DNA from: Laetmonice hystrix
Lineage: Eukaryota
DNA length: 64,000 nucleotides
Direction: 5' to 3'
Assembly: GCA_965235115.1 (NCBI GenBank)
Contig: OZ249436.1
Location: forward strand, 33,046,001 to 33,110,000
Below are positions 20,628-32,238 of the stretch, one piece after another. Both the position numbers and the translations under genes were made by a program. Position 1 is the first letter of the stretch, and every line of letters starts with the position of its first letter. Below the pieces are notes generated by a model that saw nothing but the letters and a program-made list of their open reading frames with translations, did no database searches and was not told the origin of the DNA.

Positions 20628-23600
20628 TTATTGATATTGCTGCAGTGCATCCGGCGCGTACTGCATGCCGAACGTCCTTCCGTCAATGGCGTTCATTGGT
20701 ACATGAACACGTTCACTGTTCACGCCCGACATGGCATGGCTAAACATGTTCACCGAAAGGTGGCGCCCCAGGACCGACTTGCCTCCCATGGACTTGGCGA
20801 ACGTCATGCAGATTGGCATCGTCAGTAACGGCACGGAGGGAGTGCGCAAAAACTGACCCTCGTAGTCGTCTCGGCAAAACGTCCCGTCCATTTCTGGTTT
20901 GGCATCAGGCATGAAGGGCAACGGCTCAACACCTATAAATTGGATATAAATTGGAATAATACAAACCCCAACCGGCAGTACAAAATTTCAAGCCTGTATA
21001 GCCCACACCAACAAAATGATTCTTAACAACTCATCTACGTTTTAGATGTATTTTCAACCAAACAAAAGTATAATACTGTTAGGTACAATCCGGCTTCACT
21101 TACTGTTAGGGACATTCTCTGGCAGCAGGGTTTCGTACGGTTTTTCGAGCGCCGCGTTGCGTCTATGTATCATCTTTGAGATAAAGGCCAACTGCTTTCG
21201 GAATTCATCGTGTGCCTGCTTGGCCTCGCGTTCCACGAAGTATGTCTCCGAACTGTGGCCAAGTGCGCTCTGGATTTTAATTTAGAACACTTTATTTGAT
21301 AAAATTGTAGTTATTGTAAAATATGCGAGGGTTATCCAACGGGGACAGGGACAGTCATAAAAGGGCACTATGCTGAGGGAGCCTTACCTGGTCCGCTTTC
21401 CTTATGGACATTATGTAAGCAATGGAGTTTTTGTATAAAGCCGGATTCTGGTCTGGTAGCGTTTGAACTGTCAGCTTCTTCTGCCCTAATCCCTTCGTGT
21501 TCGGCGGCGGCTTTTTCATCATTGCAGGAACCGAGGCGTCGTGTCCATACATGTCTATGGCCTGGCTGTGAGTGGCTGCATGCCGACAGGTGGTCGTGTA
21601 GAGTATCTTACTCACCAAGGCAGAGATTTCATTCCTGGTGCACAGACTCGCAGGAAGATCAATGTCAGCATGTTCACGGAAACCATTGTTCCGTATATCT
21701 TTGATCCACGCTTGGATCTCACAGTCGTTAACGACGTCCTCGTCTGATGGATAGAAATAGTTGATGAGTTTACCACAGTAGCGACAGATAACGTTCCACA
21801 GTCGGAGGCCGTCGTCGCGATAATAATAGTTGGTCAGTTTGTCGCCGACATGGACGCCACGTTTCCTGATGTCGGCGGTGAAGTCGAGGTCGTCCATTTT
21901 GAAGCGACTGTACAGTTTTCTGACGACCTGTTTGAAACCGTCACTGCCGAGAGAGGTCCACCGGTCGAGCGCGCCGCCCTTATTGAGCACGTGTGTCCTG
22001 ATCAGCCTGTTACCTGACAGTATGTACCTGTTTGGATAAGAACAATGACGACTTGGGCTTAGCGGGCTAAGGTCTACCACCACCCCGCCCCACCCCCTTC
22101 AGCCTTACAGATAGGGGCCTATAGGTGCCACCAATTTCTTCAGAGGGATATGGAAAAAATAATAGTTATCCCACCAACTTTTTCTCCTCACTTCTGTTTT
22201 ATAACAAAGAGGCACACGATAGAAAATAACATTGCCTCTATTCACCTGTTAAAATCTTACAATGAAACTTTTTTCGAGTTTTAACCCTTACTCCTAAGTA
22301 AGTGTTAATAAGTATACTAAGTTTTTTTACCGGAAGTGTGGTTTCAATAGTTTGTACACCGGATGCGACGAAGACAGTTGTCGCAAAGTTGCAACAACGA
22401 ACGGTTCGACCACCAGGTGGCAGTAAAACATGTGACTTGCCAGCTGTAGGAGGAAGTCGGCATGTCGTACCCAGAGTTTGGCCAGCAACCAATCATCCGC
22501 TGAATCTGACGAGGAACACTGTCAGTCAGCAGTCATGTTTTTATACAAATGTTAATATTGTCCCGAATATGTGTTTTTGATTGATCGAGCCATGGAATAA
22601 TATATTTTTGCGATGCAAAGGTTTAAGTTGCGTACTCGATTTCTCCTTTTTAAGCAGCGAGAAACGTAAAAGATCTATTTATGGCTTTCAAACTGCTTGT
22701 GCCATATGTAATATTTCACTGTATTTTAACAAAATAACTTGGTTACCTGTCGGCAAGAACAGAGGATTATCGTCTGCTGGGTGCTGTTTAAGCTGGATGG
22801 CCAGAGGTACAAGTTGTCCGGCGCTGTTCAAGTAGAGCAGTACCAGTGGCGCCGCGTGGTGCCGAGACTTGCTGTCTTTGGATGACGTCACCAACTGGTG
22901 CTCCAGGTCTTTGTAATCAGCCAGAAAGACGCGACCTACCTGGGGAATAAGAGATATGCATGTGAGAAAAAAAATCATGTTTGCCCATATTTACTACCAT
23001 TCACACCTTCAGACTACATAGTGTTTACGCAGGTTTGGCTCTTACTTTTCTTACTCACTTTTTCACTGTAACTTACCCGAAGTTCCTCACTAAAACTTAG
23101 TTCTCTCTCCATGAGTGGGTCCATGATATCGTCGTTGACTGGCAGATTCTCAGGGACGGTGCATAATCTCTTGATGACCAGCGGATTCGGTCCCTGTGTA
23201 AAGAGTCGACCAAATTCAGTATCGTCCATGCAGGCCCGACACATGTCCCCTTTTGGGCCGTCCGGGATTTTTGCCGACGCCTTTTTAATGAAGTATAAAA
23301 CGTTCCTGAGTTTGGACCACTTCCTCCGCGCTCTCCCCGTCAAGGACGTGTGACGTGGGACGAGGCCTGGAAGGATTGCTTTTCTGCTCGGCATGTTCTG
23401 GAAGGCTGTGGAGGCCCGCCGACCGTCCGGAGTGGTGGTCGGCTGGTGGTCCACGTACTGGTCACCTCCGTGGTGGAGGTGGTGGTGGTGATGGTGGTGG
23501 TGCGCCTGACACAGCGCCGCGTGGTGGTGGCTGTGGTTTCGCGGTTTCCCGGCCTGGGTGATTTCTGTCATGGTCATGTCGAGGTCCCACGGCAGGTAGG

Positions 23601-26600
23601 CGTACTTGTCGGCCAGCAAACGGTCGTCTGCCGGGAGGTCTTTGACCGAGGCTGCTAGGATGGCGCTCGGTAGGCCCTTTACCTGACAGAGTCAGTCGGG
23701 GCAAAATGATAGGAATACAAACAACGGAGTATTTTTAACATCACAAAGAATGGCCTTTCAAACTATGCTAGTCTGCTTTACGAAATAGACATCGCGATTC
23801 AGAAGGAAACTTATTTAGTAGGCCTACTGAGAATCCGTACCTTTCTCCAAAGATAAGCTTGTTGTCTGTTTCTTATTTCCAGGGCTCGTTCTTGACGCAG
23901 GACCTCATGAACTTCATGGTTGGGTAGGAGAACTAAAGAAAGAACAAAAATTCCATGGCGAATCATTCAAGACTATCATCTACACGGGGCATTGTGCGAG
24001 GAAGGCATATTGAAGAAAATAATTAACCATCGTGTACACGCAAGATAATTGCATCTCAGTGGAAGTTTATGAAGAGTGCTGCATATATCATCTTAATTCA
24101 AAAACCTGAAATTCAAAAGATTTTTCACAGTATCGTGAATGTCGCCTGTTTTGGTTAAGATATCAATCTGATACACTGACCGTTACCGGGACGGAGGGTA
24201 ACCTTGGAGAGTACCACCCTGTAGCAGGGGAAAAAACGAATATTGGCGGAGTCTATATCGGCGACACTGACGTAACCCAGCATCCAATCAGATGTCACTT
24301 GTCGGTGTCTCACACCAATCGTCACTGCTAAAATGGTGCCGACTGGTTCCACCCTTATCCGATAGAGGGCCCTGCCCTGGGTTTCCTTCCCGTCCAGCTT
24401 CATGTCAAGACGCTGTGGTGATGTTCGGCCCAGTGTTCCTGGCATTGATAAGAAACAGTATTAGCCTATACAATGCGTAATTATTACGTAATTTCTAAAG
24501 GAAGGAACTGCCAGGAGCCTATATTTTCAAACACATTATCCTGATCGTATAGACTTACAGTACAATATTTCTTGAATTTGTAGGCCTACATTCCCATATC
24601 TAAAAAAAACACAAATAAGGAAATATATGATTCTGAAGGGACGACTTTTTTTTATTATCTCCGATCAGTTTTGATGAACGGAGAATAGAAGTTGGGACTG
24701 CCACCTGTCAATGTGATGAATACGTCGACCCTTGGCTTTCCTTGCGTGCCGTGGCCAGTAGACAACGTTACCAAATAGGGCACCCTATCTCTGTGACTCA
24801 TCACGTCTGTGCTGTCGGCGTTGATTTGATTCATGTTCTTCAGTTCCATGGTGGTGTACATGGTAGAACAGGCTCTGTGGAAGCTCTTGCAATCCCACAC
24901 GGACACAGCTCGTTCTATGACGAGACATGGAGGTCGGTTAACGATGTTGAAGGCAGTTCTGTTTGTCGCCATAGGTGGCAGTGGTGTCGTGAATATCAGG
25001 TTCATCAGATGTAGCCATGGGGAGTTCTCTTCGTTCCATATCTATACTTGTAGAAGAATAGGAAATGTCAGGTAAAAATGATCGAGGCGGGTGTAGACAG
25101 TATAATAATGTATAAGCATAGGGCCACTAGACTCGATCCTTCCATTGTTATATTTTGCCTAATATCAATGTAGCCATTAAGATATACCTCATAATTTAGT
25201 AACATCAATCAAAGTTGAAATCACAAATAACCTCATAGGGAGGCTTAAAACAGCTGGGGCATCTTACCATCTGTGGACTCCACAAATCTAGATCTTCATC
25301 CGTGTTCAGATTATATACCTGAATCTGAAGAGCATATTGCACCGGCCGATCCTCTAGCCTTTTAGCGAATTCTTTCCTCAAATAATCCTCAGACTTATTG
25401 TTCCTTTTGTCCCGGTGGTATTCCCATGGAGTGTACTGTTGGTCCGCATCTAAAAGTCCCGATTCCATGCCTTGGTTATTTCCTGGGACCAGGCGAAACT
25501 TGGCCATGCGTGGTTTCTCGTCGACTGGTATGAATTTATAAGGAAGCTGGGAGTGGTACCGAAGTGTAGCGTACGAGTGAGGAGCTCGGCGTATGGCGTC
25601 TACCAACGCGAAGAAACTAGAAAGTGAGGGTAGAAACCCACCGACCGTCAGAAAGCGTGTTCTTACACAGACAATACAGACGGGAGAGGCCAGTTAACAA
25701 CTATGGAGGGAATACTTCTAGAAAAAGATGTTCCCCCATCCATCCTTTCGTATTGAGGCAGGTACAGCGTCTATCATATGGAATGCATACATCAATGCCT
25801 CACAACCCAATACCCCCTGGCTCCCCCATGCTGTCATGTACCATCCCCTTGCAAATTCTTGGGGGGGGGGGTGATAAGGTTGGGTCATGGTGAATTCACA
25901 GTAAAGTTGAGGTATATTAAAACCGATTCGTGGCCAAAAGGGAAGGTCGCCGCCTTTTATGAACGTTTATGGATTTTTATGCCGTAAACTCATGTTAGGA
26001 GACACATTTTGGAAGACGTTCACGAGGGGACTTACAAGTGCGGGTCCTTGTTGCAAAGGGCCATCATGCCATCAGGAGTTCGAGCGGCCATGACCTCCGA
26101 GAAGGTTTGACAGTTTCGGGCCAGGGCGACACGCCCAGTGAAGAGAAGGAGGTCAAACGGTCCATCCTCATTCTGATCGGCGAACTTGAGGGCAGCCTGA
26201 CGAGGGCACGAGGCGGCGTCATCCTCACATCGAATGGCGCAGTGTCTGCCGAAACGGGGGGAATTAAACCGAGCTTGAGGTCAAACTTGCTGTCAAAGGC
26301 GCATGAGATACATGAGATATTCCGACGTTGTTTATGAAATAAGGCTAAGAAGCCTACAATGCATATCAAATGCGCGTGTTTTTATTTGATCATATTATGT
26401 TTGTTTGCGTCATTGATTGGTCGGTTCAAGGCATGGTCAGGGGGCGAGAAAAGATGCTAAAACCCCATAACCTTATCGCTTATTTGGTTACTTAATGGTA
26501 AGTTGTCGATTTGTACCGATTGGTGGATGGCTTTTTTGTAGTTTGCTCGTTTGTTACCTTACCCCCCAAGGAGAGGGTTTCTAAGATTCTGTGGAACTGG

Positions 26601-27309
26601 TAAGCAAAGATGGCTTTTTCGAATAGTTAATCCTCGAATTTTTGAATGTTTAAACATTTTTTATTTAAAGACATTGAGAGCTTATTCTACTTTGCCTAAA
26701 TAAATACTGACCGTAATCTGACCCTGAAGCGTTTCCCGGGCACAAAGAATTTGGTTTCTGGCACTCTGGAGTCAGGATTGACGACAGCATACCCGACGGC
26801 ACCAATAGCATTGTAATGTTGAGTACCAGCCGGTGACGTGACCGCCTTCTTTACCTTGGACGTCTGGTAGGACAGGCGCGTTTTACTGCCAAGTCCAGGT
26901 TTATGCTTCTACAGACGGCAATTAAAGGAAATAAATATATTAACTTTTCAGTAATTGCGGTAATGCGAGGTGTATTTTTTATTTATTTTTATTTATTTAT
27001 TAAGTTATATTGTTTTATCATATTTAGGCTGTTGTTCAAAACAATAATGCTCCCCCCGTAGAGATATATTTTTGGTTTACTTGAGTTTAGACCAGTTCTG
27101 AATTTCATAATTCGTAGTTTTGTTACGATGAATTACATAATGTTTCCTTTGGCGCCGAATCCTTTAATTGTCTAGGGTTAAAACGTTACCTTGTTTTGTT
27201 TCTCCAATTGTTTCTTGTATTTCTCACGGCCCATCTGACGTCGACAGATTGCGTATGACATGTTCTCCCATACCACCGTGTCTTGCGCACACAGTGTCTC
27301 GGATTCCAT
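20628..27309 (-). CDS. Catalase-related allene oxide synthase-like / PLAT / lipoxygenase fusion protein (AOS-LOX), about 1215 aa, divergent
   Basis: 13 phase-compatible GT-AG coding exons: 27190-27309, 26712-26908, 26036-26245, 25268-25616, 24705-25041, 24181-24438, 23841-23932, 23077-23682, 22747-22939, 22331-22505, 21388-22027, 21104-21269, 20628-20932 (total 3648 nt). AOS-like motifs: RVRLRH, LKFAD..DGPFDL, DAIRRAPHSY, YHSQ, DYLRKEF, TAFNI. PLAT domain. LOX motifs: DDTEFG..GPNP, PLAIQL, WLLAKLWVR, SHMFYCHL, HPVYKLLKPH, YYYRDDG, RHAATH, RRN..L..PY..L.P..VPNS. The last exon is the least certain. Confidence 0.92.
22408..22425 (+). promoter_or_regulatory. CTCF consensus motif overlapping an AOS-LOX coding exon
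   Basis: gaccaccaggtggcagta; on the minus strand these are the codons for Y-C-H-L-V-V. Confidence 0.3.
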
Positions 27310-27467
27310 TCTACAATTCATCCCAATTTTAATGTTTTAATTTGTAAGTCTTACCTTATCGGCATTATCAGTAATGTAGTGAACCATCATCCCACAAATA
27401 AGAATCGATTATCTTTAAGATATGAAAAAACACTTCCGCATCCCCTTATAATTCTGACTGCAGACTT

Positions 27468-28625
27468 GTTCTTGTAGGCCTGTAGATCTACTGACACGCT
27501 CACCTGGCTTCTGGTGTTGTGATGTGACACAACCATAAACTATCGCTGGTAGCATATCCACTATCCAGAAGACAACAGTGTCTTGTAGGCCTGTAGATCG
27601 ACTGACACGCTCACCTTGCGTCTTGTATTGTGATGTGACACAACCATAAACTATCGCTGGTAGCATATCCAGAAGACAACAGTGTCTTGTAGGCCTGTAG
27701 ATCTACTGACACGCTCACCTTGCGTCTTGTATTGTGATGTGACACAACCATAAACTATCGCTGGTAGCATATCCAGAAGACAACAGTGTCTTGTAGGCCT
27801 GTAGATCTACTAACACGCTCACCTGGCTTCTGGTGTTGTGATGTGACACAACCATAAACTATCGCTGGTAGCATATCCAGAAGACAACAGTGTCTTGTAG
27901 GCCTGTAGATCTACTGACACGCTCACCTTGCGTCTTGTATTGTGATGTGACACAACCATAAACTATCGCTGGTAGCATATCCACTATCCAGAAGATAACA
28001 GTGTCTTGTAGGCCTGTAGATCTACTGACACGCTCACCTTGCGTCTTGTATTGTGATGTGACACAACCATAAACTATCGCTGGTAGCATATCCAGAAGAC
28101 AACAGTGTCTTGTAGGCCTGTAGATCTACTAACACGCTCACCTGGCTTCTGGTGTTGTGATGTGACACAACCATAAACTATCGCTGGTAGCATATCCAGA
28201 AGACAACAGTGTCTTGTAGGCCTGTAGATCTACTGACACGCTCACCTTGCGTCTTGTATTGTGATGTGACACAACCATAAACTATCTCATGGTAGAATAT
28301 CCAGAAGACAACAGTGTCTTGTAGGCCTGTAGATCTACTGACACGCTCACCTTGCGTCTTGTATTGTGATGTGACACAACCATAAACTATCGCTGGTAGC
28401 ATATCCAGAAGACAACAGTGTCTTGTAGGCCTGTAGATCTACTGACACGCTCACCTTGCGTCTTGTATTGTGATGTGACACAACCATAAACTATCTCATG
28501 GTAGAATATCCAGAAGACAACAGTGTCTTGTAGGCCTGTAGATCTACTGACACGCTCACCTTGCGTCTTGTATTGTGATGTGACACAACCATAAACTATC
28601 GCTGGTAGCATATCCAGAAGACAAC
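27468..28625. repeat. 104-bp (104-111) tandem array, about 11 copies, just upstream of the first AOS-LOX coding exon
   Basis: Unit agaagacaacagtgtcttgtaggcctgtagatctactgacacgctcacc...gacacaaccataaactatcgctggtagcatatcc; starts at 27671, 27775, 27879 and onward. Confidence 0.95.
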
Positions 28626-31290
28626 CGTGCTGATGGTATGCATATTTCGACCGGAGTCAGACAGACGTCAACCAAACAAAAATTCCATGTCAATCTGAGA
28701 ACGGCTATAACAGTGTGCACTTAATTCGACATGTACAATAAAACTTGATTATACGTATATGAGAGGTATATATTTGTCGTGCCAGGTTGCCGCCATATAC
28801 GACTATTGCTGAGAAATAATCAGATATGAGATCAAGCATCAATCACTAATCTTCTTAATGCAGGCAATGTCAGGTCCGACGACCAGGCATTTTAAGGATA
28901 GACCTACCTGAGCTTCTATTTTCTGTTACAGATTGTTAAAGCGGGCATACCTTTCATTATGGCCGTATCTGGGACATAATTTCTCCACTGGCGAGTCATG
29001 ACTGCTCTCAACTTGGACAAAGAATGGATTTTAGTTGAGATACAGTGTAGTAAGTTAAATTGGGTTGTATACAGACCACGCAGAAACACTTTTTTTCTGT
29101 AGAATGGGGCCAAACATATACCGTATAATTCATTTCCAACTCGTTCCTCTATTCTTGCATATTTAAACGGTTAACTCTGAAGCATCACTCCTGATAAATA
29201 CAAGACGTTAGGTGGTTCAGTAATAGCAAGTCTGTGTTCCACCGGCTACAAGGCTGACCTGTCTGACAGGAGCCGGGGAGTGATGCCCCCGTGAGACCTC
29301 CAGTCCACTGATCCGCAGGGGATTGACGCCTAAGCGACGAAACTTTATCCTGATCCTTTTAAACCCTGCTGAAGTATGTAAAGTTGTAAACGTATCCTCT
29401 ACATAATGGCTGATCGCTGAAGCCATAAATAATATGCGGGGGCGGATCCAGACGCAATGTGTGCATGACCAGTTCAGACCAGCTAAGATTTTTATGCATT
29501 TTATCCACATTTTCTCCATGTCGGCCTAAAATTTTAATTAAAAAAGAAAACCTGGATGCCTGACTGGTTCACGTGAACTTTTTCATTTTCTTTTCATTTT
29601 TATGTGCTCGAAAGGCCAGGCCTTCTCCAAGTACTTGACTTTACATGTTTCTGGGTTACTTTACCATGGTACCGCTGCATATATATGTCGACACGTATAT
29701 ATGTGTGCAGTTGTAGTTAGTATTTAGACAAAGGCAAAGAACGTTATGACATTTACCTAATAGGAAGTATAGTAAAGTATATGTGAATTTCGTATACGAC
29801 CTATATGAGACAACTATGCTATTTTACAGGCTGGATTTTCTCTCTATAACTACTACATGTCAGGATCGCAAATAGAAGCATACCGTCCCTCGACTTCAAC
29901 TTCCTGGATTGTACCCAATGATTCCACCGTAGATCGCGCTTCCGCCAACCTCTTGGAGAAAGAGTTGTCCACCTCCAACAACACTTTACCATCCTTGATG
30001 CTCCACATGGTACTCGTTCCGATGGAACACGTGTCTTTGCACTCCTGTGATCTCAGGAGAGTGGCTCGGTAAGTTGTCCGAGAATACACCTAATTCTTCA
30101 CACCGGTCATGATCAAACATTTTGACCAGCACGCAAGTCCAGTCCAACAAACATGTATCCCTTTATCATTCATGACTTCTCCTTGATCGCATGTGATAGC
30201 TTCTCGCTTCATTTACACAGACTTCGCTCCGTACTGCCTACTACACAGACTCAGTGCCCAGTGTGACATGATCGCTGTTGTTTGCCAACCGGTGGTGCCT
30301 AATAGAGGTACGAACCTTTCCTTTGATCGTGTGATCGGCTAATGTCGCGGTAAGGTTTTAGGAGGCAGTCAAACCTGGATACGCCTCCCTTAACAAGTTA
30401 AGTAGGTATATGTGGGTGTGTAAGTATATCATCCAGTGGCGATATAGCTGCCAGAGAATGACCATATAAAAACGAGCTGAATAATCGGTGGTGAATGAAA
30501 TCATGGATAATAGTGGCCAACAGTTCTTGTTGTACGGCATGTCCTTGCCATTTGAATCATGTAAGAAGTGCGGATACATAGATTTCACACGTTATACTTT
30601 ATCTCACCAAGGCTGCCAATCTGCAACAAGCTCAACTAATGTTTACTTGCAACCTAAGTATTGGCCTCCTTAATCCTGACTTCTGTATCGAAAGATAACG
30701 GGAAAAGAAACGCAAAATCCTTTGGTTTATCAAGTGCAAAATATGTTATTATGACGTTAGACAAGTAGATCTATCAGTTTGGACACTCACAAAATATGGA
30801 AGATATCATTTTCTCTTAGATTGTGGTAGACTGTCTGGTTGACTGACCAAAATAGACATAGGCCTACTAGTAGTGCTTACAAGAGTTCTTCTACAATTAA
30901 TGCAATTGTCATAATCCTATTTGGGTGAGTTTATTAAATTTTCTCATCCGCTTTTAAAACAAAATCCATCGATTCGGTCGACAGCCATTTCTATAGTTGG
31001 TTTCATCTGTGCTTCTTTCTGTCTGTGGCTTCAGCCCATTTAAGATCGATAATAGACATTGAAGTACACGCAAACCTCTACCCTTTACCCTACAAAATAT
31101 ATTTCACAGCCAGGTCATGAATGTCTACATCACTATGGCTAACCTCCACCCCTTTACCTGCTACCCTGACTACCGATGTTATAGATTCCGATATGTTTGT
31201 ACTTGATGCTTCCATATACCGTGTCCCACACTGAACGGTCCACTCCCGGAAGCCCTGCGTCGACTTCAGACAGAGATGACATCTATGGCC

Positions 31291-32238
31291 AAGATTCGTC
31301 ACCATTGGAGATGTTGTTTTTCAGAGTTGATGGGTTCTCGCTGTGTGCAGACATGTAAAGATTCGTCACCATTGGAGATGTTGTTTGGAGTTGATGGGTT
31401 CTCGCTGTGTGCAGACATGTAAAGATTCGTCACCATTGATGGGTTCTCGCTGTGTGCAGACATGTAAAGATTCGTCACCATTGGAGATGTTGTTTGGAGT
31501 TGATGGGTTCTCGCTGTGTGCAGACATGTAAAGATTCGTCACCATTGGAGATGTTGTTTGGAGTTGATGGGTTCTCGCTGTGTGCAGACATGTAAAGATT
31601 CGTCACCATTGGAGATGTTGTTTGGAGTTGATGGGTTCTCGCTGTGTGCAGACATGTAAAGATTCGTCACCATTGGAGATGTTGTTTGGAGTTGATGGGT
31701 TCTCGCTGTGTGCAGACATGTAAAGATTCGTCACCATTGGAGATGTTGTTTGGAGTTGATGGGTTCTCGCTGTGTGCAGACATGTAAAGATTCGTCACCA
31801 TTGGAGATGTTGTTTTTCAGAGTTGATGGGTTCTCGCTGTGTGCAGACATGTAAAGATTCGTCACCATTGGAGATGTTGTTTGGAGTTGATGGGTTCTCG
31901 CTGTGTGCAGACATGTAAAGATTCGTCACCATTGGAGATGTTGTTTGGAGTTGATGGGTTCTCGCTGTGTGCAGACATGTAAAGATTCGTCACCATTGGA
32001 GATGTTGTTTGGAGTTGATGGGTTCTCGCTGTGTGCAGACATGTAAAGATTCGTCACCATTGGAGATGTTGTTTGGAGTTGATGGGTTCTCGCTGTGTGC
32101 AGACATGTAAAGATTCGTCACCATTGGAGATGTTGTTTGGAGTTGATGGGTTCTCGCTGTGTGCAGACATGTAAAGATTCGTCACCATTGGAGATGTTGT
32201 TTGGAGTTGATGGGTTCTCGCTGTGTGCAGACATGTAA
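31291..32238. repeat. 64-bp tandem array, about 15 copies, overlapping the 3' end of the 322-aa ORF
   Basis: Unit tggagatgttgtttggagttgatgggttctcgctgtgtgcagacatgtaaagattcgtcaccat; two 67-bp variants and one shortened copy. Confidence 0.97.

Follow-up and report, generated by a model that had tools for sequence, protein, structure and literature searches.

The gene considered here lies on the minus strand of a 64,000-nucleotide stretch of eukaryotic DNA, the window (Laetmonice hystrix, contig OZ249436.1, positions 33,046,001 to 33,110,000; C1:33.05-33.11 Mb of a source genome of 627 Mb in 35 contigs), and encodes a domain related to the catalase-related allene oxide synthase (AOS) of corals, followed by a PLAT domain and a lipoxygenase (LOX). 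The AOS-like domain keeps its fold with most of the defining haem-site residues of the coral enzyme (cAOS) replaced, and we discuss below what this suggests about its chemistry.

The AOS-PLAT-lipoxygenase gene

Six-frame translation and the open reading frame (ORF) listing gave four open exon-sized blocks between 26908 and 24705, and these outer limits, already proposed in a preliminary description of the window, are true exon boundaries, 26908 being preceded by an AG acceptor and 24705 followed by a GT donor. One more exon was located upstream by tblastx against the corresponding exon of a relative (L001); its ATG is at 27321, the W-x-N motif typical of the N-terminus in this family is present (VWENMSY...), and its last residues, ...QNK, precede a gtaacg donor. 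Splice-site reading of the resulting five exons (27321-24705, minus strand) gave GT-AG introns only, with phases that join into a single open frame. The spliced AOS-like domain has 408 residues and zero stops, and the frame continues into the PLAT and lipoxygenase exons. The parts of the gene, with the evidence for each, are as follows.

27190-27321, minus strand: exon 1 (E0, 44 aa); ORF listing, tblastx, splice sites
26712-26908, minus strand: exon 2 (E1), with the distal haem motif GTQH; phmmer, MAFFT, canonical profile, splice sites
26036-26245, minus strand: exon 3 (E2), with the motifs DDAASC, DLLLFTG and ALARN; phmmer, MAFFT, canonical profile, splice sites
25268-25616, minus strand: exon 4 (E3), the best-conserved core of the catalase-related fold (RRAP-SY, YLR-E, LQIQ); phmmer to 1u5u, E=2.5e-18
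24705-25041, minus strand: exon 5 (E4), with the proximal helix HRACSTMYTTME, then the start of PLAT; phmmer, MAFFT, canonical profile, splice sites
21102-24454 (approximate tblastn limits), minus strand: PLAT and lipoxygenase exons of the same gene; tblastn, Pfam PF00305

Amphioxus, Helobdella and Montipora proteins give collinear tblastn matches on one strand from 26908 to 21102, two of the downstream exons match Pfam PF00305, and the lipoxygenase part carries SHMFYCH and RHAATH as its H-x4-H and H-x3-H iron-ligand motifs. The window gene is an intact AOS-PLAT-lipoxygenase fusion.

Homology to the catalase-related AOS, or mini-catalase, family (cAOS, 1u5u) extends over the whole domain. Matched one by one to 1u5u with phmmer, exons 2 to 5 gave E-values of 0.15, 7.4e-6, 2.5e-18 and 7.9e-4, respectively, and the spliced protein scored 278.5 bits against a profile built from 63 canonical members, covering model positions 35-323 of 347. 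None of the AOS exons matched Pfam, including the catalase family PF00199, at the gathering score; near-canonical relatives themselves reach only about 16 bits against PF00199, for which the cut-off is 25. An HMMER search with exon 4 returned 209 proteins at E<=0.001 (representative search). The window gene's own protein is not in the databases, where the best full-length matches are 35-46% identical and single-exon searches returned just one or two fragments. The closest relatives at exon level are P0004 (62% identical) and P0005/P0153, the closest named full-length homologues by HMMER score are Branchiostoma and Lingula entries called 'AOS-LOX protein-like', and homologues are present in the leech Helobdella robusta and the nemertean Tubulanus.

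Several features of the locus stand apart from the question of the haem pocket. A 104-bp minisatellite (27470-28629, ~11 copies, 94% matches) lies ~150 bp ahead of the start codon (27321), in what is presumably the promoter or 5' region, and a 64-bp tandem array occupies 31291-32238 further upstream of the gene (~12.5 copies, 98% matches). Within an insert in the lipoxygenase part, a (GTG)n tract at 23470-23502 encodes a poly-His run (ORF 23014-23619, minus strand). The three sequencing runs found for the locus represent one DNA sample, and no RNA runs holding it were found. Contigs of that sample, which cover 26563-27350 only, carry the distal-His codon without a variant. They also contain a second haplotype, about 2% different, with differences at 26904, 27144-27293 and 27179; these include a His to Arg change at codon 2 of the exon starting at 26908 and a 3-base insertion in the first intron, and none falls in the distal-His motif.

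Residues of the haem pocket

Residues were assigned by per-exon phmmer alignment to coral cAOS (1u5u/3dy5), by a MAFFT L-INS-i alignment of 30 family members and with the 63-sequence canonical profile. The published haem-pocket list comprises R64, R102, R360, T66, H67, N137 and Y353 (PMC5617202), to which R349 has been added (PMC5793058), and only H67, R102 and Y353 of this list survive in the window gene. The distal His67 is kept at 26816-26818 (minus strand; ungapped HMMER alignment to 1u5u, MAFFT and profile). Next to it Thr66 has become Gln (26819-26821), on which MAFFT and the canonical profile agree, and Arg64 has become Gly (26825-26827) according to MAFFT, position 64 being unaligned for the window gene in the profile; the motif is GTQH (26816-26827) in place of the canonical R-x-T/S-H. 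The distal Asn137 is replaced by Phe in DLLLFTG (26140-26142), and Arg349, four residues before the proximal Tyr, by Cys (24868-24870), each by all three assignments. Tyr353 itself (24856-24858) is retained and would provide the proximal haem ligand. The preliminary description, which rested on a by-eye alignment to the coral cAOS sequence, had proposed these two retentions and four replacements, and its coordinates proved exact; a proper multiple alignment with cAOS and its homologues did not restore Asn or Arg at the catalytic positions.

The changes extend beyond this set. Arg102-His103 is retained in exon 3, the Arg codon being split by an intron, and Arg360 is replaced by Asn, with a Lys one residue earlier, which leaves Arg102 alone of the haem-coordinating arginines R64, R102 and R360. 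Asp115 has become Cys (DDAASC), Phe144 Ala and Trp145 Arg (ALARN); Asp115 would correspond to the main-channel Asp of true catalases. Most of these positions are strongly conserved in the canonical set (R64, H67, R349 and Phe144 in 12/12 members, T66 in 11/12, Asn137 and Asp115 in 10/12). A thiolate ligand of the P450 type at Cys349 was considered and rejected, as close relatives have Trp or Met there.

The replacements are not spread evenly over the domain. Canonical members agree to at least 75% at 88 positions; of these, only 20 differ in every member of the clade to which the window gene belongs, and these 20 include R64, T66, N137, F144 and R349, as well as Asp115 to Cys. The core motifs of the fold (RRAP-SY, YLR-E, LQ-Q, W..PW and D-x-S) are intact. 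Together, these two observations indicate that change is concentrated on the pocket and is not a general decay of the domain.

The clade of the window gene

Besides the leech Helobdella, the clade takes in seven genomic or metagenomic relatives, recovered as loci or fragments (L001, L009, L010, L012/L013, L014/L015 and P0233), and the window's intron positions are common to many exon-sized fragments from unannotated eukaryotic assemblies. In a maximum-likelihood tree, the window gene with L009, L010, and L001 with Helobdella form a clade with 100/100 support on a long stem of 0.9 substitutions per site, apart from amphioxus, Lingula, Tubulanus, cnidarian, protist and bacterial sequences. Because the leech is nested within it, the clade is probably annelid.

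Comparison within the clade indicates that the remodelling of the haem pocket is a clade-wide state and not a peculiarity of the window gene. Every member with data has replaced Arg64, Thr66, Asn137, Asp115, Phe144/Trp145 and Arg349; position 64 is never Arg, and position 66 reads Q, R, R, R, G. Variation continues at the positions of the catalytic set, with H, H, H, R, E at 67, F, F, F, L, R, Q at 137, C, W, C, C, W, M at 349 and Y, Y, Y, Y, H, F at 353. Invariant in the clade are Arg102, Cys115 and Ala144-Arg145 ('ALAR'), and nearly so is Cys330 (Ser330 to Cys, in P-x-C-L). The leech protein (HELRODRAFT_66358, XP_009019320.1, P0046) shares the intron positions of the window gene as well as Cys115 and ALAR, and, like the other clade relatives, lacks Arg64, Asn137 and Arg349, but it differs from the window gene in having Gln137, Met349 and Phe353. 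Further differences are Arg67 in L001, Glu67 and Arg137 in L014/L015, and Leu137, Trp349 and His353 in L012.

Over 360 scorable positions, with a mean clade conservation of 0.65, positions 67, 137, 349 and 353 fall between the 32nd and the 49th percentile, and between the 12th and the 49th when position 64 is included. The four catalytic positions are thus kept no better in the clade than an average residue; in the canonical set they are conserved in 10-12 of 12 members. The AOS-like domain as a whole is under constraint. About 64% of its residues match L009, the exons of clade relatives are open within the aligned blocks, and non-synonymous divergence (dN) from L009 and L010 is 0.30-0.39 with synonymous divergence (dS) saturated. 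The preliminary description had suggested dN/dS across orthologues as a check on purifying selection, which these values bear out qualitatively, dN lying far below dS, although saturation of dS precludes a numerical ratio.

Other copies in the genome and in other animals

The source genome holds two further AOS-LOX-like loci, both non-canonical, and no canonical AOS domain was found in it. A second AOS-PLAT-LOX paralogue at C10:28078000-28088000 (~28.08 Mb; L005-L008) has a more degenerate pocket than the window gene, with no distal His and with His137, Met349 and His353; its intron layout differs in that the two exons equivalent to window positions 26908-26036 are fused. The third locus, at C29:8775000-8789000 (~8.78 Mb; L019, L022, L023), has Arg or a shifted His at 67, together with Val102, His137, Leu349 and Cys353. 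Both lipoxygenase H-x4-H His ligands are also replaced there, by Tyr and Ala, which makes this locus a candidate double pseudoenzyme or pseudogene.

Amphioxus has five groups of AOS-LOX-like paralogues (P0012, P0014, P0017, P0027 and P0034) with distinct sets of replacements at His67, Arg102, Asn137, Arg349 and Tyr353. Four of the five are non-canonical, and the remaining one is near-canonical (Bbel XP_019646486, with R-A-F-H, Asp137, Arg349 and Tyr353). The Lingula protein (P0096) has Tyr at 67, Ser137 and Leu349 and keeps Tyr353. These Branchiostoma and Lingula paralogues, which are annotated as 'allene oxide synthase-lipoxygenase protein-like', resemble the window gene in their fusion architecture and their mostly non-canonical pockets, but they lie outside its clade, keep an aromatic residue at 144 and mostly keep Arg64. 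Canonical pockets occur in the Tubulanus protein P0099 and in protist and bacterial members. An Acropora cluster (P0199) and a Montipora protein (P0200) have canonical R64, T66, H67, R349 and Y353, with His at 137.

Fate of the haem chemistry

Misalignment is hardly credible as an explanation of the replaced residues. Small indels would have to conceal Asn and Arg standing at the catalytic positions after all, and an Arg does occur two residues upstream of the Cys (HRACSTMY), and in a single-sequence hidden Markov model (HMM) alignment the distal motif came out 1-2 residues off for some amphioxus proteins. That alignment also truncated the proximal region and was superseded by MAFFT and the canonical profile. 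No method places the upstream Arg in register with Arg349, the ungapped HMMER alignment to 1u5u, MAFFT L-INS-i and the 63-sequence profile agree, and the flanking motifs, D-L-x-x-[N]-T-G as well as S-x-x-x-x-[R]-x-x-x-Y, line up without gaps. It is also very improbable that the gene is a decaying pseudogene whose substitutions represent neutral damage, as might be argued from the failure to find an RNA run for the locus and from the C29 paralogue, which is without both H-x4-H ligands. The 408-residue frame is open over five exons with consensus GT-AG sites, the match to L009 persists despite saturated synonymous sites, intron positions and open exons are kept in several independent relatives, and neither the core motifs of the fold nor the His ligands of the lipoxygenase are disrupted.

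A further alternative, possible though on balance doubtful, is that the pocket was re-engineered without loss of haem catalysis, and that the domain would act on the lipoxygenase product to form a compound that is not an allene oxide, for example by lyase, epoxy-alcohol or dehydratase chemistry. In such an active site, Tyr353 might serve as a ligand lacking its Arg partner and His67 be paired with Gln, with Phe137 as a hydrophobic side chain and Arg145 and Cys115 as new distal residues. Consistent with this, His67, Arg102 and Tyr353 are retained in both the window gene and L010, and Cys115, Ala144-Arg145 and Cys330, invariant or nearly so in the clade, look like the product of selection on a remodelled site; the new residues occupy positions that are strongly conserved in canonical members, such as 144 and 115. 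The intact His ligands of the lipoxygenase mean that substrate could be supplied, in corals minor alterations of the pocket are known to turn cAOS into a hydroperoxide lyase, and Asn137 is described as not essential in the part of that work citing Gao 2008 (PMC5617202). Against it, position 67 is Arg or Glu and position 353 is His or Phe in sister lineages, and positions 137 and 349 vary too, so that a shared haem-dependent mechanism cannot be conserved clade-wide; in addition, Arg349, which polarises the Tyr, has been lost along with two of the three propionate-binding arginines. A related and rather unlikely proposal combines the clade-invariant replacements (Cys115, Ala144/Arg145 and Cys330) with the His67 and Tyr353 retained in slower-evolving members, and sees in them a pocket re-engineered for a new mode of haem binding or for another ligand, perhaps with a Tyr ligand lacking its Arg partner and a peroxidase-like distal His/Arg pair. 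If it were true, annelids would possess a catalase-fold oxylipin enzyme or sensor with a chemistry not seen in corals.

The reading we favour, with a probability of roughly one half, is that coral-type haem chemistry has ceased in the domain, which is kept as a partner of the lipoxygenase in a structural, regulatory or ligand-binding capacity. The canonical haem pocket would have been rebuilt on the stem of the clade, coral-type chemistry being lost at its base, and the remaining catalytic residues His67 and Tyr353, still present in the window gene, would then have drifted in sister lineages. The domain may now be haem-free or a poor haem binder maintained by purifying selection, and the hydroperoxide product of the lipoxygenase would be released or handled differently instead of being turned into an allene oxide. 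A fold that is kept, a pocket replaced on the stem and later drift form the pattern expected for lost cofactor-dependent catalysis, and loss of haem catalysis with a non-catalytic role is what we infer as most likely from it. The degenerate pockets of both other genome paralogues, four of five amphioxus groups and Lingula offer a supporting parallel.

Several observations weigh against this loss of haem chemistry. His67, Arg102-His103 and Tyr353 occur together on both sides of the clade's deepest split, in the window gene and in L010, and their retention would be compatible with a Tyr-ligated haem and a distal His. Tyr353 is kept in four of six clade members, whereas it is replaced in four of five amphioxus groups and in both genome paralogues; of the paralogues compared, only the near-canonical amphioxus group and Lingula keep it. 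The clade-invariant Cys115, Ala144-Arg145 and Cys330 point to a new constraint on the pocket and not to simple decay. The reported dispensability of Asn137 for cAOS chemistry (PMC5617202, where Gao 2008 is cited) also means that the Asn137 change alone weighs little. The suggestion of the preliminary description that haem binding or peroxide chemistry has been lost or redirected is supported in part: the clade comparison supports the view that the canonical chemistry has not been maintained, and the sequence would fit loss as well as redirection.

Comparison with known AOS-LOX systems

Recruitment of a catalase fold to oxylipin synthesis has its textbook example in the coral AOS-LOX fusion, whose bilaterian homologues have been annotated 'AOS-LOX-like' by similarity; no biochemical characterisation of these homologues was found in the literature searched. 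With the clade of the window gene, all three copies in the source genome, most amphioxus paralogues and Lingula non-canonical, the label 'allene oxide synthase' is probably wrong for these bilaterian proteins. An entire annelid-type clade lacks the majority of the defining haem-site residues with its fold still under selection, and its members provide a natural series in which to study the loss or repurposing of a catalase-type haem pocket and the contribution of the domain to the lipoxygenase fused to it.

Non-canonical haem-pocket variants of the AOS-LOX fusion are already on record in corals. A stony-coral subclade with altered T66, R349 or Y353 includes Acropora millepora c002903, A. digitifera XM_015912608.1 and Orbicella faveolata XP_020618715.1 (Lohelaid and Samel 2018, PMC5793058). 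In the literature searched, such alterations of T66, R349 or Y353 were described for this subclade only, and nothing was found on the pockets of annelid or other bilaterian AOS-LOX proteins. The subclade differs from the present case in belonging to another phylum and in having its own substitutions (T66 to D/G, R349 to Q and Y353 to L), and it is absent from the tree of the window gene.

Relative to the Plexaura homomalla enzyme (1u5u; fusion 3dy5), the window gene has the same order of catalase-related domain, PLAT and lipoxygenase, alignment of its four main AOS exons requires no gaps at the catalytic sites, and His67, Arg102 and Tyr353 are shared. The two are only about 30-40% identical in sequence, and they differ at Arg64 (Gly in the window gene), Thr66 (Gln), Asp115 (Cys), Asn137 (Phe), Phe144/Trp145 (Ala/Arg), Arg349 (Cys) and Arg360 (Asn).

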